Below the pieces are notes generated by a model. It searched no databases and was not told the DNA's origin. It saw only the letters and a program-made list of their open reading frames with translations. DNA of 64,000 bases from Mobula hypostoma (taxonomy: Eukaryota): assembly GCF_963921235.1 (NCBI RefSeq), contig NC_086118.1:28024001-28088000 (forward strand), read 5' to 3'. Of the stretch, positions 4,371 through 56,018 are shown piece after piece. Each line of letters starts with the position of its first letter. Position 1 is the stretch's first letter. The position numbers were made by a program, and so were the translations under genes.

Positions 4371-4474
4371 TAATAATGGACACTACCTTTCTGAGACACT
4401 GCTCCCTGAAGATGTCTTATGTGCTAAGTTATATGTGCTAACCGCAAATATATCCTAACAATCACTAAAATATT

Positions 4475-32409: not shown

Positions 32410-32479
32410 ATGACAGAAATGGGGTTATGCTTGAACTTTTTTTATTTGATCATGTACCTGAGCATGCACTATGCAGAAC
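32410..32479 (+). CDS. B7-like gene 1: signal-peptide exon
   Basis: Acceptor ttatctgcAG at 32400; MTEMGLCLNFFYLIMYLSMHYAE; phase-1 donor AAC|GTAAGT. Confidence 0.85.
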
Positions 32480-32569: not shown

Positions 32570-32896
32570 CATTTGTGAAGCTGAATTGTGTGGAGTCAGT
32601 AACAGGAATATTTAACGAAGACACCGTACTACCATGCAGTATGGAAGGAGCAGGGATGAAAATACTAACTCTAACAAAACTAAATGAAGATGGATCGAAT
32701 GGTAAAATTGTCTTTAAGTCTAACTCAAGTGCAAGTGACAGTGGAGTTCAGGGTCGAATTAAATTACGTCATCAAGATCCACCGGATGTGTCTCTGATAA
32801 TCCAGAAAATACAAGCATCTGATAACGGAAAATATCAATACCTTGTGGAAACGGATCATGGATATGACTATAAAATCATCAATTTGATATTTAGAG
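32570..32896 (+). CDS. B7-like gene 1: IgV exon (atypical V-set)
   Basis: PFVKLNCVESVTGIFNEDTVLPCSMEGAG…RIKLRHQDPPDVSLIIQKIQASDNGKYQYLVETDHGYDYKIINLIFR; AG/GT phase 1-1; 327 nt; V-set E-F motif SLxI…DxGxY. Confidence 0.92.
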
Positions 32897-33899
32897 GTGG
32901 GTAATATAATACTTTCTCTGCTTTTAATTTTCTTTATGAATATTGGTTACGTCTAATTGGTAATAAATTGCAGTTAATACTGTATCTCTCAAAGTGCCTT
33001 GATTTGTGAGTTAGTTTGACATATGCAATATTGATAGTTATATTTGTACAGGGAAGAATGACTGAATTTATGTCATCGTTACAAGTCATATCACTGCACC
33101 AAATTGTTTTGAATTCTACCAACTTGAGTGAAGCTCTTTTCCATCAAACACTGAATAAATGTGCATGAATAAAATAAGTGATTTTTAGTTTGTGGATTAA
33201 ATACATAATTTACATTTGAGAATATGGAAGTTTCTAATGAAGCAAGACATCAGAGATTCGTAAATTGTAGACCATTGTGGGTGACAAGAAAAAATACTTG
33301 AGTGAATAGTATATAAAGTACATAGGCTTTCTGACATTTGAAGAAGGCAAGAGATAGTAATATATTCGATTAGTCATGATAGCAATAAAGGAGCAAGCTA
33401 CAACACTTGTAATTTCTGCCCTAGTGCATTAATAATCTCCTAAGGTTATTGGGACATAAAAAGAAGATTTAGTACCTTTAATGATGTATTTGTATACAGT
33501 ATCTGCAATTGGCAGTAATGCATACAAAATACATTTGGCAAGAAATCATTTTACTGGAAGTATGTACTTTAGATCTTTGGTTTTGAGGCTCTATTAGTTG
33601 AAGATCCGCATCTTTTTTTCCTGGATTTAGTTATAGATCTCTTGCACTAAGTAACGGAGAACTCCTACCTCATATCTCACTATGTTCCAGCTTTGATCTG
33701 GCTATGCCCTAATAGTTTGATTAGTCAAATAGTTTCAGATTTGAATTACGCAGTGAGTTATATGAATATAAGCTGTTCTATAAAGAAGACTGGGAAATGG
33801 CATTCATAATGTTAATATGGGTGTTAGTGCTAATTCTATTAGACATTGTGCATCCAATGCTATGGTCACATGGCTAAAGATGTAAAGCATGTCTTTCAG

Positions 33900-34151
33900 C
33901 TCCATATACTGGGCCACACATCAGCAAAAAAGAAGAAAATGGCAGAACGTTTCTTGTGTGCACAACAGTTGGATATCCACTGGCACAACTTTATTGGAAG
34001 ACTGACAAAGAAACCAACTTGAATTATAGTGTTGACATCACGCGACTGGGTGTACTGTACAACATCACCAGCTGCATTCCAGTAGTTTATGACTGGTGCT
34101 CTGTAAACTATATTTGTTCTGTTTGCATTGAAAATGGTTGCATATCTAAAG
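33900..34151 (+). CDS. B7-like gene 1: IgC exon (Cys-rich)
   Basis: APYTGPHISKKEENGRTFLVCTTVGYPLAQLYWKTD…NITSCIPVVYDWCSVNYICSVCIENGCISK; B7/BTN-type CxxxGYPxxxxxW; phase 1-1; donor AAG|GTAAGT. Confidence 0.9.
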
Positions 34152-34569
34152 GTAAGTTTGAATCTTATTTATCATTAAATGCAAGCACTGCAACTTCTGA
34201 GCCTTTATTGTGAATTGGCTGTTTATAAAATACAAGGCCTCCATGTATGCTGTAACAATTTCAATCAATGATTCAAGGAAAAGAAACACATGTACTTATT
34301 CACTACTGACACTTAATCAACATTGCGACTTGGAGTACAGTATGTGGCAGTTGTCTTGAGCAAAGCAGGCACATCTGCACGCCAATGTGATAATGATGAA
34401 GCAATGTGCTGAAGAGAGGAAATAGAAGACCCTAATGGCTGTGACTAGAGCTGTGTAGACAATGTGGATATCAGGACAAGATCTGAAGCTGGATAGAGGA
34501 AGAAAGTTGGGAAGTTTGCAGCTGCTTAATGGAACTTGATAATCAGTTTGAACTAAATACATGATCAAG

Positions 34570-37500
34570 AATGTCAAAGATCATGAAGCTCCCTTGTGTG
34601 ATTCATTGTAATGGGGTTTTGAATCATACATCAAAATCATATTTATAGTGGGCAGAAATAGTGAACCCAACAATTATAACTCCCCTCAGTTCTGCGTTGT
34701 CACAAATTACCAAAATATGCACATTCAATGAGTGTATGTTTGTAGTCTTTACCTGCTGTAGCTCATCCACTTTAAGGTTTGCCATGTTGTACATTCAGAG
34801 ATGCTCTTCTGCACCCTACTGTTGTAACATAAGATTATTTGAGTTCCTGATGCCTTCCTGTCAGGATGAACCAACCTGTACTTCGGGACTTTCTGGACTT
34901 TCTCCTCTAACCGCTCTCATTGATAAGGGTTTTTCACCTACAAAACTGTCACTCAGTGGATGTGCTTTGTTTTTTGCACCGTCCTCTGTGAACTCTAGAG
35001 ACTGCTGTGCATGAAAATGCCAGCTCAGCAGTTTCAGAGATACTCCAACCACTACACCTGACACCAACAATCATTCCACAGTCAGGCATACAGCAGGTGT
35101 AGAGTTTCGAATGAAATGGCAACTGAGTGTAGATCAGCATGATCTACTGCATATAATTATATTTTCCATTCCTTATAACATGTGGAATAATTTTAATAGC
35201 ATTTTTCTTCTTATTTTGTAATCATATTTAAAATGTTTGCATTATTTCTGCTCCACCTGTGTTCCAGGGAACACTCTTCAGTTTAACGGTAAAATAGAAA
35301 CTACTGCAGTGAGCTGAACTAAGACCATTTCACCATGGCTGATCCATTTCCTTCTCAGCACTATTCTCCTGGCTTCTCCCCATAAGCTTTCACGCCCTGA
35401 CTAATGAAGAGCTTATCAACTTATGCCTTAAATACACCCAGTGATCTGGCTTCCACAGCCACCTATGGCAACAAATTGCCCAGATTCAACAACCATTCTA
35501 AATGGACATCCCACTATTCTGAGGCTGGGTCTCTGGTCATAGACTCACCACAATAGGAAGTATATACTCTACAGCCTCTCTATCTAGGCTTGTCAACATT
35601 CGATAGGTTTCAATGAGATCACCCCTGATTCTTCTAAATTCCAGTGAGTACAGGCAAGCAAACACTCCTCATAGGATAACCCTATCATTCCTGGAAACAT
35701 TCTCATGAACATCCTCTGAACCCTCCCCAATGTCAACACATTGATTCTCATATAAGGAGCCCAAAACTGCTCACAATTTTCCAAGTGAGGCCTCACCAGT
35801 GCCTTATAAAGACTCAGCATTACATCCTTGTTTTTATATTCTAGTCCCCTGGAAATGAATGCTAACATTACACTTGCCTTCCTCACCACAAACTTAACCT
35901 GCAAATTATTCTTTAGGGAATCCTGCATGAGGTCTCCCAAGTCCCTTTGCTCCTTGGATTTTTGAATTTTTCGCCTGTTTAGAAAATAGTCGGTGCTTTT
36001 ATTCCTTTTATCAAAAAGCATGACCATGCACTTCCTGACACTGTATTCTGATTACAATATCTTTGCCCTTTCTCCAGATCTGTCTAAGTCCTACTGCAGA
36101 CTCCCTGCTTCCTGAACACTACCTACCCCTCCACCTATCTTGCTATCATGTGCAAACTTGGCCAGTTTTGTGCTTTCTACCGAGCTCCCTAAATCCTTTC
36201 TTAAGGACTTCCTCTCTTTCCCTTCCTATGTTATTGGTGCCAATAGATACCAAGACTTCTGCCTGCTCACCTACCCTCTTTAGAATGTTGTGTATCTGAT
36301 CATTCCAGGTGTCCCTATCATCTCTATACTCCCGACTTGTGAGGACCTTTTTGAAAGCAGTGTTCTATGATTTAGTTCTCTTTAAATTATAATTACATTG
36401 AAACCCTCCAAAGCTGAAATTCTCTTCAAGTTGAATCGCTATTAATATGGTTCATGTTTCCTGTGCCTCAAAGAATCATATGCAATAAGTGTGGGCAAGT
36501 TGCAGCTGAGCATGAGCATATCTGGCTTGTCTTAAAGTTCCTATTCAGTGTAACCTATGTATCCTAAGACTAGCACACAGTTCACTTGGCCCAGCGCAGT
36601 TATCTCATAAATTGATATTCTACATAGTCAATTACAAAATTAAATATTAAGTTTACATTTTTGTGCTACAGAATGTAAATTCTACATTTTGAGAAAAGTT
36701 AATTATTCATTTTCCATTGCAGAATTGGATTGTCTAAAAGTTGAAGCAATTTCTGAGCAACCATTGGATGACAATAGAACACGTGTTGGTGTTCTTCTCT
36801 GCTTGGGGTTCTTAATGCTGCTGTGCACAGCAGCTTTTTACTGCAGAAAGCAATTTTCTAAAGGTAGAGTATTAATTCTGGTCAGTGAAAGGGAAGGATA
36901 TAAAACATCGAACACTACAGCACAGTACCATGATATTGTGTTCACCTTTCAGCACAGTCCCATGATATTGTGTTCACTTTTCAGCCTACCCCAAGATCAA
37001 TCTAACTCTTCCCTCCCACAGAGCCCTCTAATTTTCTTTCATGCAATGGACATCTAAGAGTCCCTTTCATTTTTCTAACGTATCTGCCTCTACCACTATC
37101 ACTGGCAGTGTGTTTGTTCCATACATTTACCACTTCGTGTGTAAATAAAACCTACCACCAACAGACAACCCTCTACAATTTCCTACAATCATTAAAATGT
37201 ATGCTGTCTCATATTAGCCATTGATGCCCTGGGAAAAAGGTGCGGGCTGTCTACTTGATCTACACCACTTTTCACCTTATACACCTCTATCAAGTTCAAA
37301 GTTCAAAGTAAATGTATTATCAAAGTACATATATGTCTCATGTACAACCTTGAGATCAATTTCTTCCGGGCATACAGAGTAAATCCAAGAAACACAATAG
37401 AATCATTGAAACATCATATCCAACAAGGTGGACAAACAACCAATATGCAAAAGACAAAAACTGTGCAAACAGAAATGAAATATATAAATACATAAATAAA

Positions 37501-38560
37501 GTTGAGAACAAGAGATGAAGAGTCTTTGAAAGTGACTCCATAGAATGTGGAACAGTTCAGTGATGGTGCAAGTGAAGCTGTAAGGAAATAGAGGTACTGC
37601 TGTGCTTTCGTTGTAATTGTATTTACCTGCTGGGTCAAGGACAGGACATCTGAAATGATAACACTGAGGAATTTAAAGTTGCTGACACTCATTCTCATGA
37701 ATAAAGTCATCTCTCTTTCTTCTTTGCTCCAAAGTGAAAAGTCTTAGCTTGCTCCACTTTTTCTTATAAGGTCTGCACTCTAGAATAGTCAACATCCTGG
37801 TAAGTCTACTCTGCACCCTCTCTAAAGCTTCCAATCCCCCAAATAATGAAGGCCAACACACTGTACACCTTAACCACCCTATCAACTTGCATGATAACTC
37901 TAAAGGATCTATGTATGTGCACCACAAGATCCCTCTGTTCCTCAACACTGTTAAAAATGCTGCCATTAGCGCTGTACCTTACCTTCAAGTTTGACCTTCC
38001 CAAGTGAATCACTTGACACTTTTCTGAACTGAATTCCATCTGCCACTTCTCAGTCCATCAGTCCAGCCCTATATTCTGTCAATGTCCCATTGTAATCTAC
38101 GACAACCTTCTACACTAACCACAGCACCACCAATCTTTGTGTAATCTGAAAACTTACTAACCCACCCTTCCATTTCCTCATCCAAGTCATCTATAAAAAT
38201 TACAAAGAATAGGGGTCCCATAACAGGTCCCTGGGAATTCCACTCGTCATCAATCTCCAGGCAGAAGACATTCCATCTACAACCACCATCTGACTTTTAT
38301 AGGGAAGCTAATTCAGAATCCATACAGGCAGGTTTTCCTAGATCACTTCTCTGCTTGCTTTTCTAAGTGAGCTTACCATGGGGAATCTTTTTTGGTGCCT
38401 TACTAAATCTATAAGTGCCAAATCTATCACTCCATCTTCACCAATTTGTTTTGTCACTTCCTCAGAAAAGTCACTCAGGCTCAAGAAGCACGACCTCCCC
38501 CTCACAAAGCCACACTGATTGTTCCAAGTCAGACTATGCTACTTCAAAGACTCCAAAACT
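34570..38560 (-). mobile_element. Intronic Rex1 (34570-35140, 37295-37690) and CR1 (35330-36300, 37700-38560) fragments
   Basis: CR1: LYKALVRPHLENCEQFWAPY, MEFSSEKCQVIHLGRSN; Rex1: VSNFKFLSVIISDVLSLTQQVNTITTKAQQYLYFL. The span encloses the TM exon, which is listed separately. Confidence 0.7.
36723..36863 (+). CDS. B7-like gene 1: stalk and transmembrane exon
   Basis: ELDCLKVEAISEQPLDDNRTR-VGVLLCLGFLMLLCTAAFYC-RKQFSK; acceptor ttttccattgcAG; phase 1-1. Confidence 0.87.
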
Positions 38561-39316
38561 GGTGTTACATAGCAGTTTTTGAAGGTTCTGTTCTCCATTC
38601 CATTCAATAAAGACCCATTCACACTTTTACCAATCCATCTTTCTCTACTCCAACTTTAGCTAGGGTAAGACTGCAGCACCCACCACACTTAACTGAGTGA
38701 CCATTTTTCATAAAAGAGTCTAAAGAGCATCAATCATAAGCAATATAAAGTAAAAGTGGCCATTGCTGACCTCAGTCTTTTTCTCGCTCAATACCATCAC
38801 ATATTCACTACAGAAAATAAGCAATTTAACAGCAAAACATCTCAACATGGACAGAATTATAATGAAATCTGACACTGATCTTAAGAAGGAGATAATATCC
38901 CATGCAAAGAAATAACTGGTCCAAAGTGGTGGATATTGAGAGGTACTTGAAGGAGAGAAGGAGAGAGGATTAAGAGGTGGAAAATTAAAATCTGCAATAA
39001 ATGTTTACTGGAAGCCAAGTGTGGAGGAAGCAAAAAGTTTCCAGCAAGTTGCAGGGTCTTAAAATGAGAGAAACACAGGTTCAGGAAACTACTTAAATGC
39101 ATGGATAACAAATGTAAGGCATTGCTTAAAAATGAACTATTCAGATCAGCAAGGTGTAATGACTGAATGGATTTGGTCCATTTAACATGAAAACTTTAAA
39201 ACGTAGAACATAGGGGACAAATATGCCATTTGGCCTTGAGTCACCATTTAACGTGATCATGGATGATCATTCACTTCAGTATTCCTGCCTTCCCTTTTCT
39301 CTTGATCCTTCTAAGC

Positions 39317-39396
39317 CAGGGGTTCCCAACCTGGAGTCCACAACCTCCTTGGTTAATGGTAGGTGTCCCTGGCATAAAAAGAGTTGGGAACCCCTG
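39317..39396. mobile_element. 80-bp hAT-type MITE
   Basis: 14-bp TIRs CAGGGGTTCCCAAC / GTTGGGAACCCCTG. Confidence 0.75.
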
Positions 39397-40239
39397 CTCG
39401 AAACATCTAGCTACCCTCTTGAATATATTTAATGTTTTGGCCTCTACTCCCTACTGTGTGTATAATTTTTCCGATCTCGGTATGGTATACACCATACCTT
39501 GAGCCATGACCCCTTCTTCTGCACTCCTCAGCCTCTATTTAGTCCTCTTAGATTTTTTGTGTGTGTGGCTTTTAGGAAATCCACCTTCATTCTTCTAAAT
39601 TAATGTCGATATTTGTCTAACTGACCCAATCTCTCTGCATAGAATAGTCATTCCATCTCAGGGATCTCTCTGTTAAACACTTGTTCACTCCACCCATGAC
39701 AAGCAGATTCTTTCTCACATAAGGAGACCAAAAGTCCAGTTGGGCTTTCACCAAGATGACAACATTGCTTTTGCAATGAAAATCATCTAATATGAATACT
39801 TGCTTGCTTCAACTATCAACGTACAAAAGCACCCACTTGAAACACATTTCCTTTTCCCAATTTGTCATTGCTTAGATAATAATCTGCCTTTCAGTTTTCA
39901 GAAACAAAACAGATACCTTCACATTGATTCACATCAAAATGCATTAGCCATGCATTTGCCCACTGAGCACATTTTGAAGTTAAAAAATGAAGAGAAGTTC
40001 TGCAGCAAACTAAGTCTGAAATGGTTCATGGTTAAGTATTAAATCACCTGAGGCTGTTTCAAGAAACATCTTTTCAGATTCAATGTAATGCTATTTTTAC
40101 TTGAAATATTAATGTTGTCATTTTCTCAAAAGCATACACCAGGAAACAATCTGCATCAGCGCTGGTATATTTTGTGGGTATGTAACTTTTAAGAATATCT
40201 TTACAATTTCTAAAAGGAAGGGTTATCTTACCTTTAATT

Positions 40240-41830
40240 AGAACATAGAACAGTATAGTGTGGGATCAGGCACTTTGACCTACAATGGCCATAATGAAAA
40301 CAAAGAATTTCCATCTGCCTGTACATGGTCTATAACCCTCCAGTTCCTGTCTGTTTATGTGACTGTATAAATGCCTCTTGAACATTGCCATTCTGTTTTT
40401 TCCAAGTTCCTGCCACACACTGTGTAAAAAAAAAGCCTTGTAAATCTCCTTTAAATTTTTCCGTCTCACCTTAAAGCTATGCCGTTTCGTATTTGATATT
40501 TCCACCTGGAGCAAGATTCTATCAACTATGTCTGTGCCTCTCATAATGTACGATGCTCCTATCTGGTCACTCCTCAGCCTCCTGTGCTCAGGCAAAACAA
40601 TCCAAGTTTGTCCAACGTCTCCTTACAGTGAATACTCTTTAATTCAGGAAATATACTAGCAGACCTTCTTCAAAGCCCTCACGTCCTTTCTATAATACAG
40701 CAACATGAACTGCTAACTGTACTCCAAATGTGGCCTTACCAAAGTTTAATACAACTGCAATATGACTTCCCAATGTTTATACTCAACACCCCAAAAGCTG
40801 AAAGCATGTATGCCAAATCCCTTCCTTACCACCTTGACTTGTGTTGCAGCTTTCAATGAGCTATTGACTTCTTCCTCAGTATCCCTAAGTACAATAATGC
40901 TCCTCACTTCCTGCTATTTACGGAACAAATTCCTTGTGCATTTGACCTCCCAAGGTACAACACCTCACATGTATTCAGATTAAACTCCATCTGCAATTTC
41001 TCTGCTCGTATTTCCAATTGGTGTATATCCTACTGATTCCTTCCGCACTATTCACAACTCCCCCAGTTTTTGCATTGTTTACAAACTCAGCCACTTACTT
41101 CCATCCAAATCATTTATATAAATCACAAGCAACAGAGGTCCCAGCTTTGACCCTTGTGGAACGTCACTGGCCACAGACCTCCAGCCAGATTAACACCCCT
41201 GCGTAATTATACTCTGTCTTTTATGGCCAAGCCAATTTTGCATCCAACCTATCAAGTCTCCATGGATCTGTTGGGCCTTAGTAGTCTCGATTAACCTACC
41301 ACAAGTAACCTTATCCACAGCTTTAATACAGCATTTACTGCCTTGCCATTATCAATCACCTCAAAAGGCACAATCAAGTTTGTGATATATGTCCTCCTCC
41401 AAAGGAAGGAATGATGGAGTAGACTCGATGTGCCAGTTGGCCTAATTCTGCTTCTGTGCCTTATGGTCTTTGCTTTTCCAGATACGAGTAGATCCTGTCC
41501 ATAACAATTCTCTCCAATAATTTTGTGTAAGGCTCACAGGCCTGTAATTTGCTGGTTTGTCTCAAAAATAGAGGAACAGCATTGACTATTCTCCATTCCC
41601 CTGGGACCTGTCAATATACAAAGATATCTGTCAAGGCCCCAGCGATCTCCTGCCTTGCCTCTCTCGGTAACCTGGGATAGATCACATTAAGCTCTGGGGA
41701 TTTACTCAGCATAATACTCTTCAGCAGCCCCAAGTTCTCCTGCTGTTTAGTATCAACATGATCTAGAATATCAGCATAACACACTCAGATCTCACGATCC
41801 TTCGTGTACTTATCTTTGAATGCAAAATAT
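40240..41830 (-). mobile_element. CR1 fragments, decayed
   Basis: EHRRLRSDQIGASYIMRGTDIVDR…RHSFKVR; CR1 tail near 40240. Confidence 0.65.
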
Positions 41831-41894
41831 TTGTTTCCTCTGAGGTTCCTTGAATTCCATCCTTCAACTGACGAGTTATTTTTTTCTCCAACAG

Positions 41895-41911
41895 ATGGTG
41901 AAGAAAATTGA
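41895..41911 (+). CDS. B7-like gene 1: probable terminal coding exon (DGEEN*)
   Basis: Strong acceptor gttatttttttctccaacAG; phase 1; followed by AT-rich sequence with several AATAAA (~42093-42303). Confidence 0.5.
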
Positions 41912-42416
41912 ATATGTATATCAAGTTAATTCTCAAAAAAAGAACCAGTTTCTGTCATCAATCTACTCCTGTCAATCAACATAATTATTCATGTTAATTA
42001 GCAAAATCACTCCTGTCAATATATTTTCACTAGATTCCTGTGTTGATAACTCATAGTTTAATCAGCTAATCATGTTGTTCTTTCTGCATCCAAATAAATG
42101 GACTGAAATCTGAACTGAGAGATATCAAAAGAAAAAATTAAGAGAATTTTCCGAGAAGCAGGCAGGATGAAGCCTGACTTTCTGAAGGTTATGATCAAGG
42201 CACAGAACAGCTGAACTCAATAAGAAAAATAAATCCTTTCTGTTTGATTACTTAACTTCGTGGAAATGTAATAAATCTTTAGTAATCGACTTTTAAAATA
42301 AATATACTCCAGATTTTAGACAGTATTCAGAATGATTTTATTGTAATGGCAAGTTAATCAATTTTTCAGTCAGAAAATTAATGTGAAAGTTATTTCCTAA
42401 TTCCAAAACCATGTTC

Positions 42417-43887
42417 CAGACATCCCACCCTGCAAAAACTCATTACAGGGAGGAAGCATCCCTGCCCCCCGCAACCCCATATCCCCCCACCCCCCCCACC
42501 GGTCGACCTCCAAGGGTGTATGTAATACTTTGTTTAGTGCTTTTGTCTAATCTGTAAACCAAGTTGGATATATGCAGAAAATGTGACATTAAAATATGTA
42601 TTTATATTATATTATCATGTTTATTCTATTACAACTTTAAGCAAGTCTACAGGGAGTTTGGCCTCATTAATAGCGTAGCTCCTTAGCAGCCAGCCAGCTA
42701 GTTTAAGTAACGTTAGCTATGCTAATGAACGAATGACAGCTGTTAAACTCACCTCAACACGTCTTTTACATTTTAACCCACCAAGGGCAATAGAAAAGTC
42801 ACTGTTGCAAATAGTGCAGTGAGCAACACTGTCATTATTTTTGAGGTCGACTGTAAAGCCCACCCACAGAGAAAACTGATAGGTCTACTTCGCAGGGGTC
42901 CCCAACCTTTTTTGCACCCCGGACCGGTTTAATGTTGACAATATTCTTGCAGACCGGCCGACTGTGGGGGGGGGGGGTGGGGGCAGTGTTAATCACGGCC
43001 AGAACATAAGTGATAAGTCAACTATAAGTCACTTATAAGTGGCTAATACACTCAATTTCGTTTCTAAAAGGGTTTATCTAACAAATTTAATATTAAACAC
43101 ACAGCGCACATTTTCCTCGCATGAATATGATGATAAGTCAATTATAAGTCAATAGCATCATAACATGTTAAGTAACGTTTGGATATTAAACACACAGCAC
43201 ATATTTTCCTCGTATGAACATATAAAATCATTGCAATACACAAATATTGCTGAATCAGTGGGAGCCCTGGGCTTGTTTTCCTGCAACAAGACGGTCCTAT
43301 TGAGGGGTGATGGGAGACAGCGATACTTGAAGGGGGTTCCTTATGTCCAGTCTATTCTGCAATTTAGTTTTCGTTGCATTCATTGCAGAAAAGCCTGCTT
43401 CACAGAGATATGTCGGAAATGGAAGCAATGTTTTCAGTGCTTCCATGGCTATTTCAGGATATTCAGCCTTGACTTTGATCCAGAATGCCGGCAGAGATGG
43501 TATGTCAAACATACTTTTCAGTCCGCTGTCATTTGCAAGCTCGAGGAGTTGATCTTCTTCCCGCACTGATATGGATGACGCATGCGTAATAACCTCGCGT
43601 GCGTTCAGTTCAACAGTGGGCGTGACAGGGAATGAGGAAAGGTGCAGCTGACTCATATCGTTTCATATCATCAAATCACATTGTTTCCTCATGGCCCGGT
43701 GGTTGGGGACCACTCTTAGCACGAAGAGAGACCAATCAGGATGCTCGCTCTCCCTCTCTCCCTCCCTCTCCCACTCTTTCTCAAAAAAAATCAATTTCCA
43801 GGATATTGTATATAATTTCCGGGTGTCAGGGAGCCACTATCAATATGCGGGAGACTCCTGGAACTTCCGGGAGAGGTGGGATGTCTG
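42417..43887. mobile_element. Non-autonomous TIR DNA transposon (hAT-like) hosting a nested Charlie element
   Basis: 13-bp TIRs CAGACATCCCACC (42417-42429) / GGTGGGATGTCTG (43875-43887). Confidence 0.7.
42893..43715 (-). mobile_element. hAT-Charlie/Buster deletion derivative with transposase C-terminus
   Basis: TIRs CAGGGGTCCCCAACC / GGTTGGGGACCACTC; ORF 43297-43656 FWIKVKAEYPEIAMEALKTLLPFPTYLCEAGFS (hAT dimerisation domain). Confidence 0.85.
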
Positions 43888-44125
43888 ACGTTCAGACCCA
43901 TCCTACAATCCATGTAAGCTTAGACTCTTAGATGTGGAAGCCCAGAGCACAATACCAAGAATTGCTTCATTCAATGCTTACAATGTGTTAGGACTGTTAG
44001 GGTTGATGAATAAGGCAACGGTTCAGGTATACAGTATAGAAAGTGGGCAAGTAGATGCACAGACTATACGGGCAATAGTCTTCTACCATAATATGTGTCA
44101 TGTAAGGTTAATGATGTGTACACTG

Positions 44126-45006
44126 TGTTACGTACCCCGTAACTGGGTTGCCAAACCAGCAGAAATGGATCACTCAGTTGGAGTCTGGATTACTAGAACT
44201 AAGAAAGTTTTATTAAAGAAACAAGCAACACAGTAATCGAAAGGATAATAAATGCAACAGTTCAGTGATGATAAACACACATGTGCACAGAATTAAGATA
44301 ACAGCATCAATCAAGCTCTATCGTTGTCTAGGAGTAAATGACCAATTTCAAAATGACTCAAAGTTCAGTCCAGTTAGTAGTTCAGTTCGCAGTAATCTTT
44401 GCCATGGCGATGGACAAGGTGGGGGAAGAGAGACAGAGAGAACAGGAACAACTCATCATTCAGCACAGCTTCACTCACAGACCAGCAAGATGGCTCACAG
44501 ACCAGCGAGATGGCTCACAAACAGCTTTTTGGGCGGGTCCTTGGTGATGTCACCTGAGGTCACCGACTGTGACCCCTCCTCCAGATGCGGTCGATCCTCT
44601 GCAGTGAACCCGGCACCCAGGCAAGGGCGGACACACACCGGGTTCCCGCTGATCGTACCTTTCCACCCTGGTCGTTGTCTGGTACTTCTCACCCACTCGT
44701 GAGAAGCGTACCGCTTCCAGGGTCTCGTTACCTCGGGTGGCGTGTGTGTCTGTCTTAGCGAACCTGTCCCTTTTTATCCCCCTGCTGGGGTATCACCTGT
44801 CCATCACTTCAAACAGTTCAGGGTTCAAAGGGGGAGCCCCTCCAGGCAGCTCTCCCTCCCACATCCCTTCATTACACATCTCCAGACGCTGCTCCATTGT
44901 TCCTTATCTCTCCTTCCCCTGAGGGCAGGTGGCAGACCAACTGCTGATGCCACTGATGCTAGCCCAGGCCAGCAAACATCTTAATTTTATGTGTATTCTC
45001 GTAACA
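44126..45006 (-). mobile_element. Solo LTR, 881 bp (Gypsy-like)
   Basis: TGTTACG…CGTAACA termini; 4-bp TSD ACTG at 44122-44125 and 45007-45010; minus-strand AATAAA (TTTATT ~44209). Confidence 0.88.
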
Positions 45007-45419
45007 ACTGGTATAGAATGGTGGGTAAGACAGCACCTGGAATTTTGTTTGAAGGTCTGGTTGGCACATGATAGAGAAGAATTAGAATTGGAATCAGTTT
45101 ACTGTTATCACGTGTACAGTGAAAAATTTGCCTTGCACAAAATTCATACAGATCAGTTGATTACAGAAGTGCATTGAGGTCTTACAATGTAAAACAGTAA
45201 CAGTGTGCATAATAAAGTGTTACAGAGAAAGTGCAGTGCTGTAGACTACAAGATGCAAAGTCATAATGAGGCCGACTGTGAGGTCAGGAGTTCATCTTAT
45301 CATACTGGGGAAACATGCAATTGTCTTATAACAGCAGGGCAGAAGTTGTCCTTGAGCCTGGTAGTAAGTGCTTTCAGGCTTTTTTATTTTTTGCCTGATG
45401 GAAGGGGGAGAAGAAAGAT

Positions 45420-47062
45420 TCTCCATAGTGGCCAGAGCCATCAATGCTATTCATTAACCCTTTCATTCCCAAGAACATTTTCACGAACCTCCCCTGAACC
45501 CTCTCCAGTACCAGTGTATTCTTTCTTAGAAAAGAGATGCAAAAATGTTCACAGTGCTCCAAATGCAGTCTGACCAATTCCTTAAAAAGTTTCAGCATTA
45601 TACCTTTGCTTTTATTCTCTTCCTCTGAAAATTTAATTTGCCTTCCTTACCACCAACTTGAACAACAAGTTAACCTTTTGGGAATCCTGCTCAAGGACTC
45701 CCAAGTCCCTTTGCACCTGAGCGTTCTGAAATTTTTCTGTTTAGAAAATAGTCTACAGCTTTATTCCTTCTACTAAAATGCAAGAAAATACCATTCCCTA
45801 CACTGTACTCCATTTGCCACTTCTTCACCCATTCTCCTAACCTGTACAAATTCTTCTGCAGACTCAGTACTTCCTCAACATATCCTTTCCCTCCACCTAC
45901 CTTTGTACCATCAATTGGCCACAAAGCCATCAATTCCATCATCTAAATCATTGCCATATATTGTGACAAAAAGCAGTCCCAAAACCAAATATTGCAGAAC
46001 ACCAGTAATCAATGGCAGCCAATCAGAAAAGGTCTCTTTTATCCCCCCTTTTTTCCTCCTGGCAGGGAGCCAATCTTCTTCACACTGTACTTCAATCAAT
46101 AAATAAACAAACAAACAAACAAAAAAAAACACATTAAGCTTTCCCACTTAAATGTCAGTCACCTGGTCAGGCTAGCTTCCCAATATATGGTCCCTCCTGT
46201 AGTTAAACTACGTTTCAAGAAATCGTCACGGATGCAGCTTACTATGTTTAAGCCTTTTTACACTGAGGAAGTCCAAGTCAATATTGAGGAAGTTAAGATC
46301 ACCCTCTACAACAACCCTGTTGTTTTTAGGTATTTCCATAATTTGCCTACATACCTGTTCCTCTACCTTCTGCTGGCTATTAAGCAAATTATTTCTCACT
46401 AGTCTCCAATGCATATCACTTCCCCTTTACCAATCATTTTCTCTTACTATGTTTACATTAAACCTGCAGGTTTAACATCTCTGCTAAATCCCCTTGTTTT
46501 ATAACCTTATATTCTCTTTCAAATTCATTTTGTATCCCAATACTACCTTTTCTAGCTCTCTCAGTCAACTGTATTTCCGCTTTACCGTGTATTTGACTTC
46601 TTATGTAGCCTTCTCTTACTTTATTTGTTGACATTTATCATTGATAAGGGCAAGCCACTGTTTTGCTTGGAGTGAGAGAGGATGAGAAGTGACCTGATAG
46701 AGGTGTATAAGATGATGAGAGGCATTGATCATATGGATAGTCAGAGGCTTTTTCCCCAGGGCTGAAATGGCTAGCATGAGAGGGCACAGTTTTAAGGTGC
46801 TTGGAAGTGGGTACAGAGGCGATGTCAGGGCTAAGTTTTTTACACAGAGAGTGGTGAGTGCGTGGAATGGGCAGCCAGTGATGGTGGTGGAGGTGGATAT
46901 GATAGGTTCTTTTAAGAGACTCCTGGATAGGTACATGGAGCTTAGAAAAATAGAGGGCTATGGGTAACCCTAGGTAATTTCTAAAGTAAGTACATGTTCG
47001 GCACAGCCTTGTGGGCCGAAGGGCCTGTATTGTGCTGTAGGTTTTCCATGTTTTTCTATGTT
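45420..47062. mobile_element. CR1 fragments (45420-46620 -, 3' end 46660-47062 +)
   Basis: LQKNLYRLGEWVKKWQMEYSVG; RGHSFKVLGSGYRGDVRAKFFTQRVVSAWNG; tail 'ggccgaagggcctgtattgtgctgtag'. Confidence 0.8.
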
Positions 47063-47094
47063 AACCATGTGAGTATCCAATGTTATATTGGTGG

Positions 47095-47325
47095 AGCAAC
47101 ACACATCAAAGTTGCTGGTGAACGCAGCAGGCCAAGCAGCATCTATAGGAAGAGGCGCAGTCGACGTTTCAGGCCGAGACCCTTCGTCAGGACAGTCCTG
47201 ATGAAGGGTCTCGGCCTGAAACGTCGACTGCGCCTCTTCCTATAGATGCTGCTTGGCCTGCTGCGTTCACCAGCAACTTTGATGTGTGTTGCTTGAATTT
47301 CCAGCATCTGCAGAATTCCTGTTGT
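47095..47325. mobile_element. 231-bp palindromic Penelope-derived mini element with back-to-back hammerhead ribozymes
   Basis: 99-bp arms 47095-47193 / 47195-47293 (one mismatch seen) around a 1-nt centre; hammerheads at 47194-47229 (+) and 47159-47193 (-); 12-bp TSD TTATATTGGTGG at 47083-47094 and 47326-47337. Confidence 0.92.
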
Positions 47326-47724
47326 TTATATTGGTGGATTTAGGGAGGGATAGGCTTCTATGGAAGTCTGGGCACAGAAACATTCATTCAATAGGTCTCA
47401 ATAGGTACATTTAATGTCAGAGATATGTATACAATATACATCCTGAAATTCTTTTTTATGCCAACATCCACAAAAACAGAGGAGTGCCCCGAAGAATGAA
47501 TGAATGAAGACAAAATGCATTTTGTGTCTGCACTTCTCTTGACCTGTCCCCATCGTCCATCCCATACATTGTTGAGGAGTAGCAAGTGAGAATGCAGGGG
47601 TACATACATGGTGCAGTTGACTTTGTCTTGATGAAGGTGTTTGAATTTTCAAAGCTAGACATCAATTGGGATGTGTACACATAGAACTATACCGAACTAT
47701 CTGTTCACACCCAATATAGTGACA

Positions 47725-48178
47725 TACACTTAATGACCCCTTTATTAGGTACACCTGCGCATTAATGTAAATGTTTTATCAGCCAATTGTGTGACTGCAA
47801 TGCAATGCAAAGTTCCTGTTCAGACCGAATGTTAAAATGGAGAAGAAATGTGATCTAAGTGCCTTTGAGCATGGAATGATGGCTGGTGCTAGATGGAGTG
47901 GCTTTGAGTATCTCAGAAACCACTAGTCCCCTGGGAGCAGCAGTTTTGTGGGTGAAAATGCTTTGTTAGTGATAGACGTCGGAGGAGAATGGCCAGACTG
48001 TTTCAAGTTGACAGGAAGGTGACAGTAAACAATGCAGATCTACTGATCACACAGCACCAATCTGATTACACAACACATCAAACCTTGAAGCTGATGGGCT
48101 AGAGCAGCAAAAGGCCACTAACATAGTAGTCACTATATTATGCACAGGAGGTTCCTTATAAAGTGGCAACGGTGAGTT
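47725..48178 (+). mobile_element. Tc1-like non-autonomous element
   Basis: Degenerate TIRs 'ctttattaggtacacctg' / 'aggaggttccttataaagtggc'. Confidence 0.65.
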
Positions 48179-48399
48179 AATCTTGTATGTTGATTGTTGA
48201 TATTGATCAACTGCTCTCGTTGTAGTAACTTAAAACAAAATTAAAAGCTATTTTTTTTGGTTTTTGAGAGATTCTCCCACCAGCCCCCTCCCTGTATGTT
48301 TGCTAGAAGCGAACATAAAGCCTGCAAAGTCTACAGCTTCGTTTGTTTGTTTGTGGCTCACTTAACCACAAAACAGGTTTCCTTGCCAGTGCAATCCAA

Positions 48400-48936
48400 A
48401 CCAACGCTCAGAATGCGGAAGTGATTATTTTGTGCTCGTTATGAATGCAAATATTTGCGATGTCAGACCACAATATTAATTAACGTTCACGAAGAAAACT
48501 AAAATAAAAATTGGAAGACGGTCTTTAGACAATGTCCCTGGAATAAATGCCGGAGCAGTGCAATAAGGAGAAAGTCCGGCTGGGGACAGTATATTTCTTA
48601 CAAGAAAGGGTAGGGTTTTCTGAAATTACAGTCCCGGGTAATTCCCGCTTTAGTTTCGGTTTTCGCAGCAGGCATTGACCTTCATTTCGTAAGACGCTTC
48701 TCCGAGCGGGCTGTTGGTGATTAGACTGCGGGTTACCTGCAAGTTTAACAGCCGTACAACTTAACAAAGTTGCATGTCAGGCATAAATCTTCGGTAGTTA
48801 TTTTTCGAATTGAAACTCGGTATCGCCACTGAAACAGAAAGCAAGAAAATTGAAAGTCCAGGAAACAGAGTGTCCCCAGTCCGCCGAATCGAACGCGAGT
48901 TTTGGGGGCTCTCGGGAGACAGCGTTCAGCGCGTTG
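48400..48936 (+). promoter_or_regulatory. CpG-rich promoter and non-coding exon 1 of B7-like gene 2 with IRF/NF-kB-like motifs
   Basis: IRF-E AGTTTCGGTTTTC at 48652-48664; GAATTGAAACT 48807-48817; GAAACAGAAAGC 48831-48842; GAAAATTGAAAGT 48845-48857; kB-like GGGTAATTCCC 48636-48646; donor TTG|GTAAGC after 48936. Confidence 0.7.
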
Positions 48937-49315
48937 GTAAGCTTGGCTCCGCGATTTCTCCACAGCTCATCGCAGACTCTTGCAGCTTTCTCAAGTGGAT
49001 CGAAATGGCAAATCCGGTTGCCCTCTGTAGATTCCTCCACTTGCCTGTTGCTTTAGCTCTTCTGATTTTCTGTGTTTGCATTAACACTTTGATCCAGGCA
49101 GCGAATGTCCGCAGTCGCGAAGAGTCTGCTGAATGTAGAGCAAACTAGAAAACCAGCAGGTTACCAGGTTTTCTGATTGATCAACAATATGTAGTTGATG
49201 CAATTTACCTTTTTAATGACCTACTTGGAATTTACATTATATGAAATTCCTGACAAATATTCGATTTCTGATCTTTAAACTTTTTTTTCTATATTGTGTT
49301 TCAATCGGCAGGCAA

Positions 49316-49397
49316 ATGAAGGGAATTCTGGAAATGGATTTAAACCTACAAATATATTTTTATTTTGTGCTGTTTGCAAACCTTTACTCTGCACAAG
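49316..49397 (+). CDS. B7-like gene 2: signal-peptide exon
   Basis: Acceptor ggcAG at 49311; MKGILEMDLNLQIYFYFVLFANLYSAQ; phase-1 donor AAG|GTAAGT; resembles the gene 1 leader (EMxLxL). Confidence 0.85.
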
Positions 49398-49481
49398 GTA
49401 AGTAGTAAATCGTTTTTCGGTCACTAGCTCATTCAACGTGATGATAGTAATGGAAGATGATGGGATGTATTTTTTTTGCAG

Positions 49482-49805
49482 AGTTCATGACTTTGAAGTG
49501 CGAGGAGACGGTGACGGGAATATTTGAGGAGGACACGATATTGCCATGCAACCTGACAATAACAAAGCCAAGTAAAATCACAATTGAATTGAGCAAAGAT
49601 GATGGAAATTCTAGAATTGTTTTTAAGTTTGATAGAAATCATAATGCCAGAGAAGCTCAGAATCGAATTAAATTACTTCGTTCGGATCTACAAAATGTAT
49701 CGCTGCTACTTCAAAAAACAAAACTTTCAGATAGTGGGAAATATACTTACTATATGGAAACAGATGTGGGATATAAGCAAGTTAACATCGTTTTAGTGGT
49801 TAAAG
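49482..49805 (+). CDS. B7-like gene 2: IgV exon (atypical V-set)
   Basis: EFMTLKCEETVTGIFEEDTILPCNLT…RIKLLRSDLQNVSLLLQKTKLSDSGKYTYYMETDVGYKQVNIVLVVK; phase 1-1; donor AAG|GTGAGT; about 42% identical to gene 1 V by manual alignment. Confidence 0.93.
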
Positions 49806-50693
49806 GTGAGTAACAGTGTGCTTTCCCTGTTTTTTCATTTCAAAACCTGGTTAATTCTAACTGACTTCAAATGCAGTTTTACTTACCCAAACACCTTTGT
49901 TTTGCTTTTATTATTTCAAATATAGACTTCATTTATGAAAAAAAGATAGAAAGTTACAGTAGGTAAATAAACACTATGAGAATTTTATCTGTAAAACAAA
50001 GAATACTTTTGCATTTATATAACAGGTTTCAAATCTCCAGACTGTCCCCAATCATATCACTTTCATTGCAACCAAGCCCCACTTATATTAGTAAACTCAC
50101 CAGGTAACTGGTAGGGTGAAAGTATCCACTCATGCTGGATGACTGTACTACTGAGTAGATTACCCACTTTTGGTGTTTTTGCATCAACCTATGCTGGCAA
50201 GAATCCCTTGGCATTAATGCTGAGAATGAACTGCTATCTCTCCTGAGTAGTGACGTACCCCACAGGCAGCGGTTGCACCAAGAGTATCCTCCAGGAATCT
50301 GTACCCAGGGCTTTGCAGCTTAAAGATGGTGTAAGCATAGCAGTACCCATTCAAAGGAATGGAAAATGTCTCCTGGAACTATTTTCCTTAAATAGTTATA
50401 TAGCATAGATAAGAGTTTGTTTTTCAATGCAAAAATATTTACAGCTCGATGAATGTTCATGAAAGTGAAAGCCTCTGACGCAGAGCTCAGGGTCTCACTG
50501 GTTGCTGCATCTATTCAGTGGGTCCTGCTGATTACCTGAGCTGCGATAGCAATTGGGTGGCGTTCAGCCATTATTAAGTGTTAAGAGTTTTGATTTTCAG
50601 GGGCCACGCTGGAATACCATGACAGGGATGGCAGATTTTGGAATAATGAAAGATTGGCCAATATTATCAAATAATACAATGCTCTCTTTTTAG

Positions 50694-50978
50694 CTCCCTA
50701 CAGTTTGCCAAAACTGGCCTTAGTTAATTTGACAGAAACGACCAAGGTGGTCAGTTGTGAAACAACTGGATATCCTTCTGCTCAGATTCATTGGACCGTC
50801 AATGGGAAAAACCTCACATCTAGGTCAAAAAACAAAGAAAGTGAAACTGCTCAAGGACTGATCTCTATTACCAGCACACTTCCAATTATAAAGTCAGAAA
50901 CTGACCAGGAGCATATCTACACCTGTGCTGTATGGAATGAGGCAGAGCATAAATATGAAGCCAAGAACAGTATCTCAA
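50694..50978 (+). CDS. B7-like gene 2: IgC exon
   Basis: APYSLPKLALVNLTETTKVVSCETTGYPSAQIHWTVNG…ITSTLPI…IYTCAVWNEAEHKYEAKNSIS; canonical C-W-C; phase 1-1; donor CAA|GTATGT. Confidence 0.92.
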
Positions 50979-51019
50979 GTATGTTCATAATCTTCTTTTT
51001 CATGATTAGGAAAATGATT

Positions 51020-52150
51020 GTTTAACTAATTGCTACAATATTTCTGCTTCTCAATGCTGCCAACTTGGTATATTTGGATTTCCAGAAGAACTTTGAGTGG
51101 GTGTAACAAAACAAATTTCAGCATATGTCACAAGGTGCAATATACTGGCCAAGTCTGAACATTGGGATATGGACAAAAAAATTAGAAATAGGCTGGTGAT
51201 TTTCAATCTGGGAGGCATGACAAGTGGGGTGCTGCAGTGATCAGTCTTAGCTAGAAAAAACTAGAAGAAGTTAATGGTTCAGGTAGCATTTGTAAGAAAA
51301 ATGGCCAGTTGATACCTTGGGTTTAGCCCCTCCATCTGGACTGAAAGAGGAGAGATATAAACCATTAGAGGGTGAAGAGAAGGGCTGGAACAAGAGCTAG
51401 CAGGTGATAGGTGAATTCAGGTAAGACTGGGTTAGTCAGATGTGGAATCAAAGGGGGAAGGTACAGAGAGAAGATGGGAGTAGTGGGGGAGGGAAACAAT
51501 TGAATATATGAACATAAAAAATAGAAACATGATGATGCCATCTGGCCTGTCAAACCTGCTCCACCATTAAATAGTGATAAATTGAAAGCTGTTGGTGTTC
51601 AGAGGAATGTACACATCATTTGACACAAATCACTGGAATTTCATATCCATTTGATGCAATAAATAGGAAGCCAGATTATTTATTAGGTTTTAATTGCACA
51701 ATGATTTGACTTCAAGAATAGGGCCATCTTGCTCCAATTATTTAGGGCCCTGGAGAGCCAACATTTGGAATACTATTTGCCTATGGATTTGCAGTGGAGA
51801 GACTGGAGCAATGGGTAACTAGGTTAATTCCCAGAATAGGGGTTTTGACCTCTGCTCCCTTAAATTTAAAAGAATCAGTGTTGATCTCATTGGAAGGTAC
51901 AAAATTATCACAGTTCTTCCCTGGCTGAAGTGTCTGGACACAGCATCAGTTTCAAAATTCAGGATTGTCCTTTCGTGACCCAGATGAGAAGAAGGTTTTT
52001 CATCAGAAGCTGGTCAATCTACCCATGGAGACTGCAGAGACTGAATCGCCAAATATTTCCGTGATTGAGATAAATAGAAGTTTGGATATTTAGAGATATG
52101 GGGAAGTGTTTGAAAATATAGCTGAGAAAAAAAGCACAATCTCATTGAAT
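51020..52150 (+). mobile_element. Decayed CR1 fragments plus an old Penelope remnant
   Basis: CR1 RT-region similarity ('gggaggcatgacaagtggggtgctgcag', 'ccaacatttggaatact'). Confidence 0.5.
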
Positions 52151-52391
52151 GATAGGGAAGTTGTTATATTTTAGTTGTTCCAATCATTCTTTTTCTTACA
52201 TTTGTTATGCTCCAGAGGCTATATTTAGCTCTCTAGGGTGTTTTTTTCCGGGGTGGTTATGGGATTATACAGTTTTGCTTGGAGATCAACATGACTGATT
52301 TTTAAAAATTGTGGAGTGTATAAGCATATGACGTCAGTGTTCTTATAAAGATTGATGATGAAATTTACAGCTCTTCTGTTGTTTTTTTTAG

Positions 52392-52538
52392 TTTCAAATG
52401 TATATCAGCTAAATAATAAAAAACACACTGAAGAAAAAAGGAGAAAAGCCCTCACAGCAGTAGGTATCGTTATTGGAGGTCTTGCAGTTGGAATACTCAT
52501 CCTGGGTCTTCTGAAATTCAGGAGAAGGCACCATCCAG
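52392..52538 (+). CDS. B7-like gene 2: stalk and transmembrane exon
   Basis: ISNVYQLNNKKHTEEKRRK-ALTAVGIVIGGLAVGILILGLL-KFRRRHHP; phase 1-1. Confidence 0.88.
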
Positions 52539-52852
52539 GTACACTATTTCAGCAAATGATTTTAATTCCAAGTAAAACTTCTGAATCCTTGTAACTCAAA
52601 GTATTAATTATTGGTGTAAAATTATGCATAGATAACCAATGATCAATATAAAATATAATTTCATAATCTGTGAAAGATTTAAAACTTTAATGGTTGCCAA
52701 ATTGTTATGATCTACAGCTGGCTGGTTGAAATCATTAGCAGGGCTGTATTTGTGCATTTGCCTTCCAAAAACAAGCAGATTTGAAATCCTGTCTACAGTG
52801 GATGTTTACGGTGATAGGTAGATAAAGTATCAATATACACCATAATAAATTA

Positions 52853-54990: not shown

Positions 54991-55421
54991 AGAGTTAAAT
55001 CTTTATGCTTACAGTTACTGGCAGCAGGCAATTGATTAAACTGCGCTCAACTACCCATATTGTGAGGCTAGGATTTGAATTAATTTCACCTGGATTATTT
55101 ATAACTTGAGACAATTAAACTGATCGATTGGTAACATAATTTCCTATTGAAAAGGAGTGACATATTATTTGTAGCCTGGTCCCAGTCTAAAAATTGGATC
55201 AATTTTGCATTCCATTATTGTTGGAAATACCTGAATATTACAGAAAATGTAAGAATTCATTATTACTGTCATTGTTACTACTCTTAGTATACGTGATTAG
55301 GACTTTAAGAACAATAAGGAAAATAATTTGCATTATTTTTACATCAAGAAATATTAATTTACTTAAAATTAATGTGACATAAATAATAATAATTCACTTT
55401 CTTTTGTTTTTAGTTCAACAG

Positions 55422-55448
55422 TCCAAGGAAGAATCAGAACATCAAGTG
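55422..55448 (+). CDS. B7-like gene 2: candidate 27-nt cytoplasmic mini-exon (VQGRIRTSS)
   Basis: Acceptor cttttgtttttagttcaacAG, donor GTG|GTAGGT, phase 1-1; an alternative AG at 55413 would give a phase-0 end. Confidence 0.45.
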
Positions 55449-56018
55449 GTAGGTTTGATTTCAAACATTGACTTATTTTTAGCCCCACACATCACGATTT
55501 TCAAAGTTTATTTGTTCTTGTTTAATAGCTTAAGTAATTTCTTATTCAGCTTTGAAGACTGCCCCGCTAACTTCAAACTTACATGGAGGAACCATCATTT
55601 TGTGACGTGATGTCTGATCTGCCTGATGTTCTGTTGTGCAACTGTGAAACTTCAACATCCTTCACAAAGAACTAAGACATTCCTCTGTAATAACTTGAAA
55701 GCAGGAATTGTGCTTTCAAAAATCTCAGCTCTTGGGTAAAATAACAATTCCAGTTTTAACTTTGGCACTTTGTTGAACTCTTCACCATTGCTTTTATCTG
55801 AAGTTAATGACTTCACATATTGATAAATCTCATCAGTGAGATCAAACTTAAGTGTCAAGGAATGACCCTGTTTTATACCTGAAATACTAAGTCTGTGTAC
55901 GAAATCACCATAAGGCAATGAAAAGAGAATAAGCTCTTAAGCTTAGTTGCACTTTGAAAGTTTGCTTCCTGTTGAATGAATCCATTAAGCTATTTTTCCG
56001 CTGAGCTGTACTTCTCAG

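Follow-up and report, generated by a model that had tools for sequence, protein, structure and literature searches.

Two tandem B7-type genes of the ray Mobula hypostoma encode V domains in which an A–B disulfide probably stands in for the canonical B–F bond

Introduction

What holds an immunoglobulin (Ig) V domain together when its F strand offers no cysteine for the canonical disulfide? This question is raised by two tandem genes, here called gene A and gene B, in the genome of the ray Mobula hypostoma (assembly GCF_963921235.1, contig NC_086118.1, positions 28,024,001 to 28,088,000 of the forward strand). The whole stretch of 64,000 nucleotides that was analysed is referred to as the window, and all positions are counted from its first letter. 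Canonical V-set domains possess a disulfide between Cys23 and Cys104, near which position ~6 packs, and a Trp at position 41; no features of Ig domains are more conserved than this B–F disulfide and the Trp. The genes in question resemble those of B7 proteins, which are immune checkpoints. An earlier note on this DNA, made from the sequence alone, had singled out the region 32570-49805, bounded by the beginning of one V exon and the end of the other, and had proposed that in both paralogues a bond between strands A and B replaces the B–F disulfide.

Results and discussion

Both V domains carry their only two cysteines in strands A and B

The V domain of each gene is encoded by a single exon:

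32570..32896, + strand: gene A IgV exon; AG/GT boundaries, phase 1; detected by Pfam V-set, the family hidden Markov model (HMM) and AlphaFold2
32587-32589 (Cys6), 32635-32637 (Cys22), 32680-32682 (Leu at the Trp41 position) and 32839-32841 (Tyr at the F-strand Cys position), + strand: key codons of the gene A IgV exon
49482..49805, + strand: gene B IgV exon; AG/GT boundaries, phase 1; detected by Pfam, family HMM and AlphaFold2, with splice joints in RNA-derived contigs
49499-49501 (Cys6), 49547-49549 (Cys22), 49589-49591 (Leu at the Trp41 position) and 49748-49750 (Tyr at the F-strand Cys position), + strand: key codons of the gene B IgV exon

Each exon encodes a domain of 107-108 residues, and the two score 28.5 and 32.4 bits against the Pfam V-set family, that is above its gathering cut-off of 26 bits. 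The peptides from which the A–B bond had been proposed were all located on the + strand, namely LNCVESVTGIFNEDTVLPC at 32581-32637, DNGKYQYL at 32821-32844, LKCEETVTGIFEEDTILPC at 49493-49549 and DSGKYTYY at 49730-49753. As had been claimed, each V exon contains exactly two cysteines 16 residues apart (residues 6 and 22), and Tyr replaces the F-strand Cys in both paralogues. The canonical combination of Cys23–Cys104 and Trp41 is absent from both V exons, which have Tyr at position 104 and Leu at position 41. A further claim, that the BC-C and C'-D segments are nearly unalignable, goes too far: the paralogues align at 44% identity with one one-residue gap inside the domain in addition to an end gap. 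By segment, identical residues amount to 0/6 in the BC loop, 3/8 in C, 4/8 in C', 5/14 from C' to D, 6/9 in F and 4/5 in A', which is the usual contrast between variable loops and conserved framework. That this divergence reflects different binding partners, as had also been suggested, is a reading not supported here. At 44% identity, dN/dS between the paralogues is saturated.

To place the two cysteines in the fold, AlphaFold2 was run on both V exons with a 48-sequence family alignment. The models reached mean predicted local distance difference test (pLDDT) values of 88.7 for gene B and 86.5 for gene A, with predicted template modelling scores of 0.82 and 0.81. The gene B model superimposes on CRIg and B7-H6 with a Z score of 15.7 and a root-mean-square deviation of 1.6 Å over 105-106 residues, and on B7-H3 and PD-L1 with Z scores of 14.9 and 14.6, respectively. 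Foldseek returned template modelling scores of about 0.8 to solved V-set domains, with sialoadhesin and Siglec-7 among the matches. Such confident superposition over the whole length argues for an ordinary V-set sandwich despite the lack of Cys104 and Trp41. Strand limits common to both models are 3-6 for A, 9-12 for A', and 18-20 and 22-25 for B; strands C, C', D, E, F and G are present in both, whereas a short C'' was called in the gene B model only. In both models, strand A ends with Cys6, and the four-residue B segment opens with Cys22. By these limits, the A-strand Cys would face the B-strand Cys. Throughout the family, hydrophobic residues or Cys at positions 2, 4 and 6 alternate with polar residues at 3 and 5, indicating that the Cys6 side chain points into the core, like that of the B-strand Cys.

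The A-strand cysteine is invariant among relatives that keep or lack the F-strand cysteine

Relatives were collected with a profile of the two V exons against 1.84 billion representatives. Proteins of ~290 amino acids were recovered from many fishes, comprising sharks (Scyliorhinus, Carcharodon, Chiloscyllium, Mustelus, Heterodontus, Stegostoma, Rhincodon, Pristiophorus and Cetorhinus), rays and skates (Hemitrygon, Hypanus, Mobula, Pristis and Rhinoraja), sturgeons and paddlefish, bichir and reedfish, and teleosts (Chanos, where the gene is named 'zgc:174863', Astyanax, Pangasianodon, Hoplias, Anguilla, Mastacembelus, Scophthalmus, Centropristis and Cebidichthys). A word-based search with the sturgeon protein P0084 gave matches in Acipenseriformes only.

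The A and B cysteines are invariant in 24 full-length relatives that were chosen regardless of their cysteines, as are the IgC Cys pair and the IgC Trp, and the same two V cysteines are invariant in all 37 family rows of the set used for the phylogenetic tree (see below). The F position, however, varies: elasmobranchs, bichirs, sturgeons and otomorph teleosts have Tyr or Phe there, and eels and percomorphs have Cys together with the Trp. The earlier statement that some teleost CD276-like proteins combine an A-strand Cys with the F Cys proved correct for the eel, Mastacembelus, Scophthalmus, Centropristis and Cebidichthys orthologues. Ectodomain cysteines number four in gene B and in most Tyr/Phe-type proteins checked (A, B and the IgC pair), as compared to five in the Cys-type proteins.

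The absence of a core Trp, which had been regarded as part of the same rewiring, holds in both paralogues but is not a trait of the family. Leu or Ile occupies position 41 in elasmobranchs and otomorph teleosts, whereas bichir, sturgeon, eel and percomorph proteins keep the Trp. Since bichir and sturgeon retain the Trp and yet lack the F Cys, loss of the Trp is a separate and later event in elasmobranchs and otomorphs. The missing Trp is lineage-specific and stands outside the rewiring.

On a maximum-likelihood tree, the F position changed between Cys and an aromatic residue at least three times, the outgroup included, while the A and B cysteines never change. The tree was computed from V+C sequences of 37 family members and three canonical outgroups, with the three trait columns masked; it was preferred to a tree of V domains only (128 rows), whose resolution did not suffice for rooting the trait. 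We also compared 161 aligned B7-like V domains from the search, counting as an A Cys any Cys located 13-17 residues ahead of the B Cys. Of the 72 domains with an A Cys, 62 lack the F Cys, as compared to 3 of the 89 without, a count over related sequences that are not phylogenetically independent; the contrast fits the repeated switches seen on the tree. The spacing from A to B Cys is 15-16 residues in 59 of the 62 Tyr/Phe-type domains, and 13 in a divergent protein from a caecilian. The A-strand Cys is the defining novelty of the family, and in its presence the F Cys, nearly immutable elsewhere, becomes dispensable.

A caecilian protein (Rhinatrema bivittatum P0125), placed on a long branch, is the only tetrapod match without the F Cys. 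Its three V domains are arranged in tandem, Trp takes the place of the F-strand Cys, and four cysteines cluster around strands A, B and C (C..C…C…EHC). A hagfish protein, the 'CD276 antigen-like' P0027 of Myxine glutinosa, was considered as a three-Cys intermediate and rejected. It has a Cys 17 residues before the B Cys and keeps the F Cys, but a fourth Cys lies nine residues further upstream (CX8C), so that the N-terminal pair is probably bonded to itself. P0027 comprises three V domains, in each of which such a CX8C pair immediately precedes strand B and the canonical B–F cysteines are present as well; its N-terminal Cys arrangement thus differs from that of the fish family.

An A–B disulfide is the best reading of the two cysteines

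What, then, pins these domains? The reading that we favour, and regard as probable though well short of certain, is that Cys6 and Cys22 form a cross-strand A–B disulfide in place of the B–F bond. It is supported indirectly by several observations taken together: these are the only cysteines of the V domain, they are invariant, they sit at strand ends that face each other in the models, loss of the F Cys is linked to presence of the A Cys, and KIR2DL4 provides a precedent. The V domain would thereby be pinned by an intra-sheet bond within the ABED sheet, replacing the inter-sheet B–F bond, and Tyr at the F position and Leu at the Trp position would refill the core.

Non-canonical Ig disulfides, the A–B bond included, are already a known class. 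In the crystal structure of the D0 domain of KIR2DL4, a human NK receptor (3WYR), A-strand Cys10 is bonded to B-strand Cys28 in a strained -RHstaple, leaving F-strand Cys74 free (PMC13661046). In cells, both the A–B and the B–F state exist, and protein disulfide isomerase (PDI) controls the switch (PMC13661046). Bonds of the -RHstaple type typically join adjacent antiparallel strands at a Cα–Cα distance of about 4.3 Å (PMC1949407). Like the ray genes, KIR2DL4 D0 has an A-strand Cys beside the canonical B-strand Cys, and its three-Cys layout (A, B, F) is that of the eel and percomorph orthologues. On the other hand, D0 is not a V-set domain, its spacing is 18 rather than 16 residues, the feature is restricted to one primate KIR, and there is no homology to the ray proteins beyond the Ig fold. 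The third, F-strand Cys of the KIR2DL4 type is absent from the window genes, both of which have Tyr there. An A–B bond, if formed, would consequently have no canonical alternative in the ray proteins, whereas the F Cys of KIR2DL4 allows its bond to swap.

Siglecs offer a second comparison, as their V-set domains replace the inter-sheet B–F bond by an intra-sheet bond of the ABED sheet that uses the B-strand Cys (PMC9875244). However, the partner strand is E in Siglecs and would be A, on the other side of B, in the ray proteins; Siglecs are lectins with a conserved Arg, and the families are unrelated. A Siglec-type Cys in strand E was not found, the ray V cysteines being confined to residues 6 and 22.

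Several points weigh against an A–B bond. The antiparallel pairing of residues 3-6 with 22-25 would set residue 6 opposite residue 22, but this register is read from the strand limits of the models. To this comes the relatedness of the sequences in the count given above. Moreover, eel and percomorph orthologues possess the A, B and F cysteines as well as the Trp, with five cysteines in the ectodomain. As the A Cys is kept even where a B–F bond is available, its conservation alone is no proof of an A–B bond, and to this extent the original proposal, which is otherwise supported indirectly, is weakened. Finally, domain 2 of the bichir protein P0106 and the Betta protein P0115 have the B Cys and an aromatic F position but no A Cys, implying that a lone buried B Cys is evidently tolerated.

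These same proteins are what an alternative without any V disulfide could draw on. Disulfide-free V domains are well known, and it is conceivable that Cys6 and Cys22 are buried for packing, as free thiols in a domain that lacks a disulfide like those of CD2, CD58 and SLAM, with the A Cys serving some other conserved role. The eel and percomorph orthologues, in which one Cys must be unpaired next to the B–F pair and the Trp, and the single-Cys relatives P0106 (domain 2) and P0115 would agree with this view. However, adjacent inward-pointing thiols are expected to bond in the oxidising secretory pathway. Both cysteines are invariant at 20-45% identity and over >400 million years, although Val, Ala or Ser would pack equally well, and the F Cys was repeatedly lost only where the A Cys is present. 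In addition, the KIR2DL4 crystal shows an A–B bond even though an F Cys is available. On balance, we consider free thiols unlikely.

CD2, CD58 and SLAM do resemble the ray proteins in having N-terminal immune-surface V domains without the canonical disulfide, and the V exons give a weak Pfam match to Receptor_2B4 (E = 0.17). Unlike the ray proteins, however, they lack a Cys pair that could compensate, and their V domain precedes a C2 domain containing two disulfides. Membership in the CD2/SLAM group was rejected: the second domain is of B7 type (PF08205/C1-set), with one canonical Cys pair in gene B, and no SLAM protein is among the top 60 profile matches.

A different role for Cys6 would be an intermolecular one, in which it joins two chains covalently or attaches the protein to a partner while Cys22 stays free. 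Cys6 lies only ~7 residues from the predicted mature N-terminus, and gene A also has an unpaired Cys in its stalk, both of which would suit such a link. Yet, Cys6 is in phase with the inward hydrophobic residues, lies inside a confidently modelled strand (block pLDDT of 93) and keeps a distance of 15-16 residues from the B Cys in nearly all members, which makes an intermolecular bond highly improbable.

The ray genes fall into a B7 lineage of fishes

As a further alternative, the genes could simply be ray orthologues of PD-L1/PD-L2 or CD276, ordinary members with a private substitution. The automatic names of the relatives seem to say so, although they are inconsistent among themselves (PD-L2-like, PD-L1-like, CD276, BTN1A1/2A2-like and hemicentin-like). 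Moreover, CD276 and PD-L1 are the top matches of a full-length family profile against PDB, with 88 bits (E = 4e-24) and 80 bits (1e-21), respectively, followed by BTN1A1 (68 bits, 8e-18), PD-L2 (67 bits, 2e-17) and CD80/86 (~50 bits, ~2e-12). A single V exon searched with phmmer against PDB gave weak Ig matches (titin, 1e-3; CD276, 0.08). Orthology would also be in line with the APYS junction between V and C domains, the GYP..W motif of IgC and, as in shark PD-L1, a Phe near the N-terminus that precedes the B Cys by 21 residues.

Against this, PD-L1 of catshark, nurse shark and skate is encoded by separate genes with the canonical C/W/C residues and D122, and PD-L2 arose only in tetrapods (Kondo et al. 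2025, PMC12151841). In the present family, the D122 equivalent is variable. Furthermore, the family forms a 100/100 clade as compared to the three canonical outgroups in the maximum-likelihood tree, spanning an elasmobranch group (90/93) and a ray-finned group (99/99). A JUPITER/JPT neighbour in Chanos and sturgeon, an adjacency not known from the human CD276 neighbourhood, likewise speaks against ordinary orthologues. Orthology to PD-L1/PD-L2 in particular was rejected, given that the F Cys and the Trp are absent, that of the PD-1 contact residues F19 and D122 the Phe is present but the D122 equivalent is variable, and that shark PD-L1 is a separate gene (PMC12151841). Orthology to CD276, the best PDB profile match, is conceivable. 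In our judgement, a mere substitution in a known orthologue is a rather remote prospect.

As for the JPT neighbour itself, the family member of Chanos chanos (L001, 2178-6069) has a JUPITER/JPT (HN1-like) gene immediately upstream, and JPT is fused to the family member in a sturgeon gene model (Acipenser ruthenus P0182). The adjacency in milkfish and sturgeon constitutes conserved synteny, which could help in naming the family. The window was searched for a JPT/JUPITER gene as well, but contains neither this nor any other flanking gene.

The exon plan of both genes and the similarity of the V+C ectodomain profile are those of B7 proteins. With B7-H3/CD276 and PD-L1 the ray genes share the phase-1 arrangement of signal peptide, IgV, IgC and transmembrane exons, the APYS junction, the IgC motif C..GYP.A.I.W and a short tail; they differ by a V domain without Cys104 and Trp41, by the additional A-strand Cys and by lack of conservation of D122, the Asp that contacts PD-1. 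Judging from these comparisons, the ray genes appear to represent a B7-family lineage restricted to fish, with B7-H3/CD276 and PD-L1 as its closest kin. Within this lineage, genes A and B represent an old split, gene A grouping on a long branch with a Hemitrygon gene named 'BTN1A1-like'. From this kinship we infer a role as cell-surface ligand for a receptor that would probably belong to the CD28 family, possibly one of the orphan CD28-family receptors that were recently described in fishes (PMC11599192).

The lineage would be a B7 branch >400 million years old that carries no name in the literature searched, where neither the family nor its Cys pattern was found described (queries: zgc:174863, fish B7 without canonical Cys, A–B V-set disulfide). 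The analysis also flags misleading automatic names in shark and ray genomes, i.e. PD-L2-like, CD276, BTN1A1-like and hemicentin-like. The exchange of the F Cys for Tyr or Phe, or back, at least three times beside an invariant A-strand Cys amounts to a natural experiment in fastening an Ig core anew. The only characterised A–B bond of this type, that of KIR2DL4, works as a redox switch, so that redox control of a costimulatory ligand becomes a testable idea in this family. One could speculate that the eel and percomorph proteins toggle between A–B and B–F bonds as KIR2DL4 does, that the forms with an aromatic F residue, including both window genes, are fixed in the strained A–B (-RHstaple) state, and that reduction by PDI or thioredoxin gates binding to the orphan CD28-family receptors of fish. 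We offer this thiol-disulfide switch as a long shot.

Architecture and expression of the two genes

Both genes are intact tandem paralogues on the + strand and follow the same plan, with signal peptide, IgV, IgC and transmembrane segment on one phase-1 exon each. They are predicted to encode type I membrane proteins with a signal peptide, IgV, IgC, a transmembrane segment and a short tail. A six-frame scan of the window with the family HMM found genes A and B as the only members. In addition to the IgV exons listed above, gene A comprises:

32410..32479, + strand: signal-peptide exon (MTEMGLCLNFFYLIMYLSMHYAE), donor GTAAGT, phase 1; collinear with Hemitrygon akajei P0003 (tblastn)
33900..34151, + strand: divergent IgC exon; family HMM 62 bits, weak Pfam C2-set_3 match
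36723..36863, + strand: stalk/transmembrane exon (ELDCLKVE...VGVLLCLGFLMLLCTAAFYCRK); 77% identity to P0003 residues 213-260
42043..42135 (extent of the tblastn match), + strand: probable cytoplasmic-tail exon; Hemitrygon isoform P0152, 68% over 31 amino acids, E 3e-8
40123-40200, + strand: weaker candidate for the cytoplasmic tail

The IgC domain of gene A retains the canonical C...W...C and has four extra cysteines (NITSCIPVVYDWCSVNYICSVCIENGC). Together with the stalk, whose Cys lies in ELDC, it contains seven cysteines, an odd number, and its Pfam match is weak (18 bits). Skate relatives of the A type that lack IgC altogether exist as well: P0001 is built as V-V-transmembrane and P0016 as V-transmembrane.

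Gene B comprises, besides its IgV exon:

48521..48610, + strand: alternative upstream coding exon of a longer isoform; 100% identity to residues 2-31 of Mobula birostris isoform P0186
49311..49397, + strand: start-codon exon (ATG at 49316, MKGILEMDLNLQIYFYFVLFANLYSAQ); spliced contigs
50694..50978, + strand: IgC exon (CETTGYPSAQIHW...YTCAVWN), CD80-like C2-set / C1-set; PF08205 42.5 bits, PF07654 34.5 bits; splice joints
52392..52538, + strand: stalk/transmembrane exon; family HMM, joint 50978>52392
55383..55451, + strand: probable cytoplasmic-tail exon (VQQSKEESE...); weak tblastn match, and contigs reaching past 52538 encode QQSKEESEN

Transcription of gene B and the splicing proposed in the model were confirmed. 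In four public runs, which belong to two studies and two closely related organisms, contigs contain the joints 49397>49482, 49805>50694 and 50978>52392 at GT..AG and skip the introns 49398-49481, 49806-50693 and 50979-52391 exactly. One contig of 1825 nucleotides joins all four exons, and exons are covered about ten times more deeply than introns. An upstream 5' exon joins the acceptor at 49311, as indicated by loose ends of RNA-derived contigs. The spliced model from the start codon through the transmembrane exon matches exactly that part of Mobula hypostoma XP_062930410 (LOC134360239, P0189), which is annotated as 'uncharacterized protein', and the gene B V domain is 98% identical to that of a Mobula birostris protein.

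Over 49300-52600, spliced contigs are deep and intron contigs shallow in the runs X1-X6, whose label as RNA is itself a guess; this is the behaviour of RNA-seq data that include a certain background of unspliced or genomic sequence. The second organism, whose contigs are 95-99% alike, shows differences at 49616 and 49706 of the V exon. The resulting changes, Ile45Leu and Leu75Val, yield precisely what the Mobula birostris protein has at these sites, and the Cys codons are unchanged.

Other elements in the window

At 3856-4383, 8807-9316 and 9207-10317, all on the - strand, there are open reading frames (ORFs) that show a GIY-YIG-type endonuclease motif (…YIGETRRRLGDRFVEHL…) and resemble reverse transcriptase, in two copies or more. 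Low-complexity ORFs related to them are found again at 7-8.4 kb, 10.5-11.4 kb and 14-14.8 kb. Judged from the ORF list, these look like copies of a Penelope-like retroelement.

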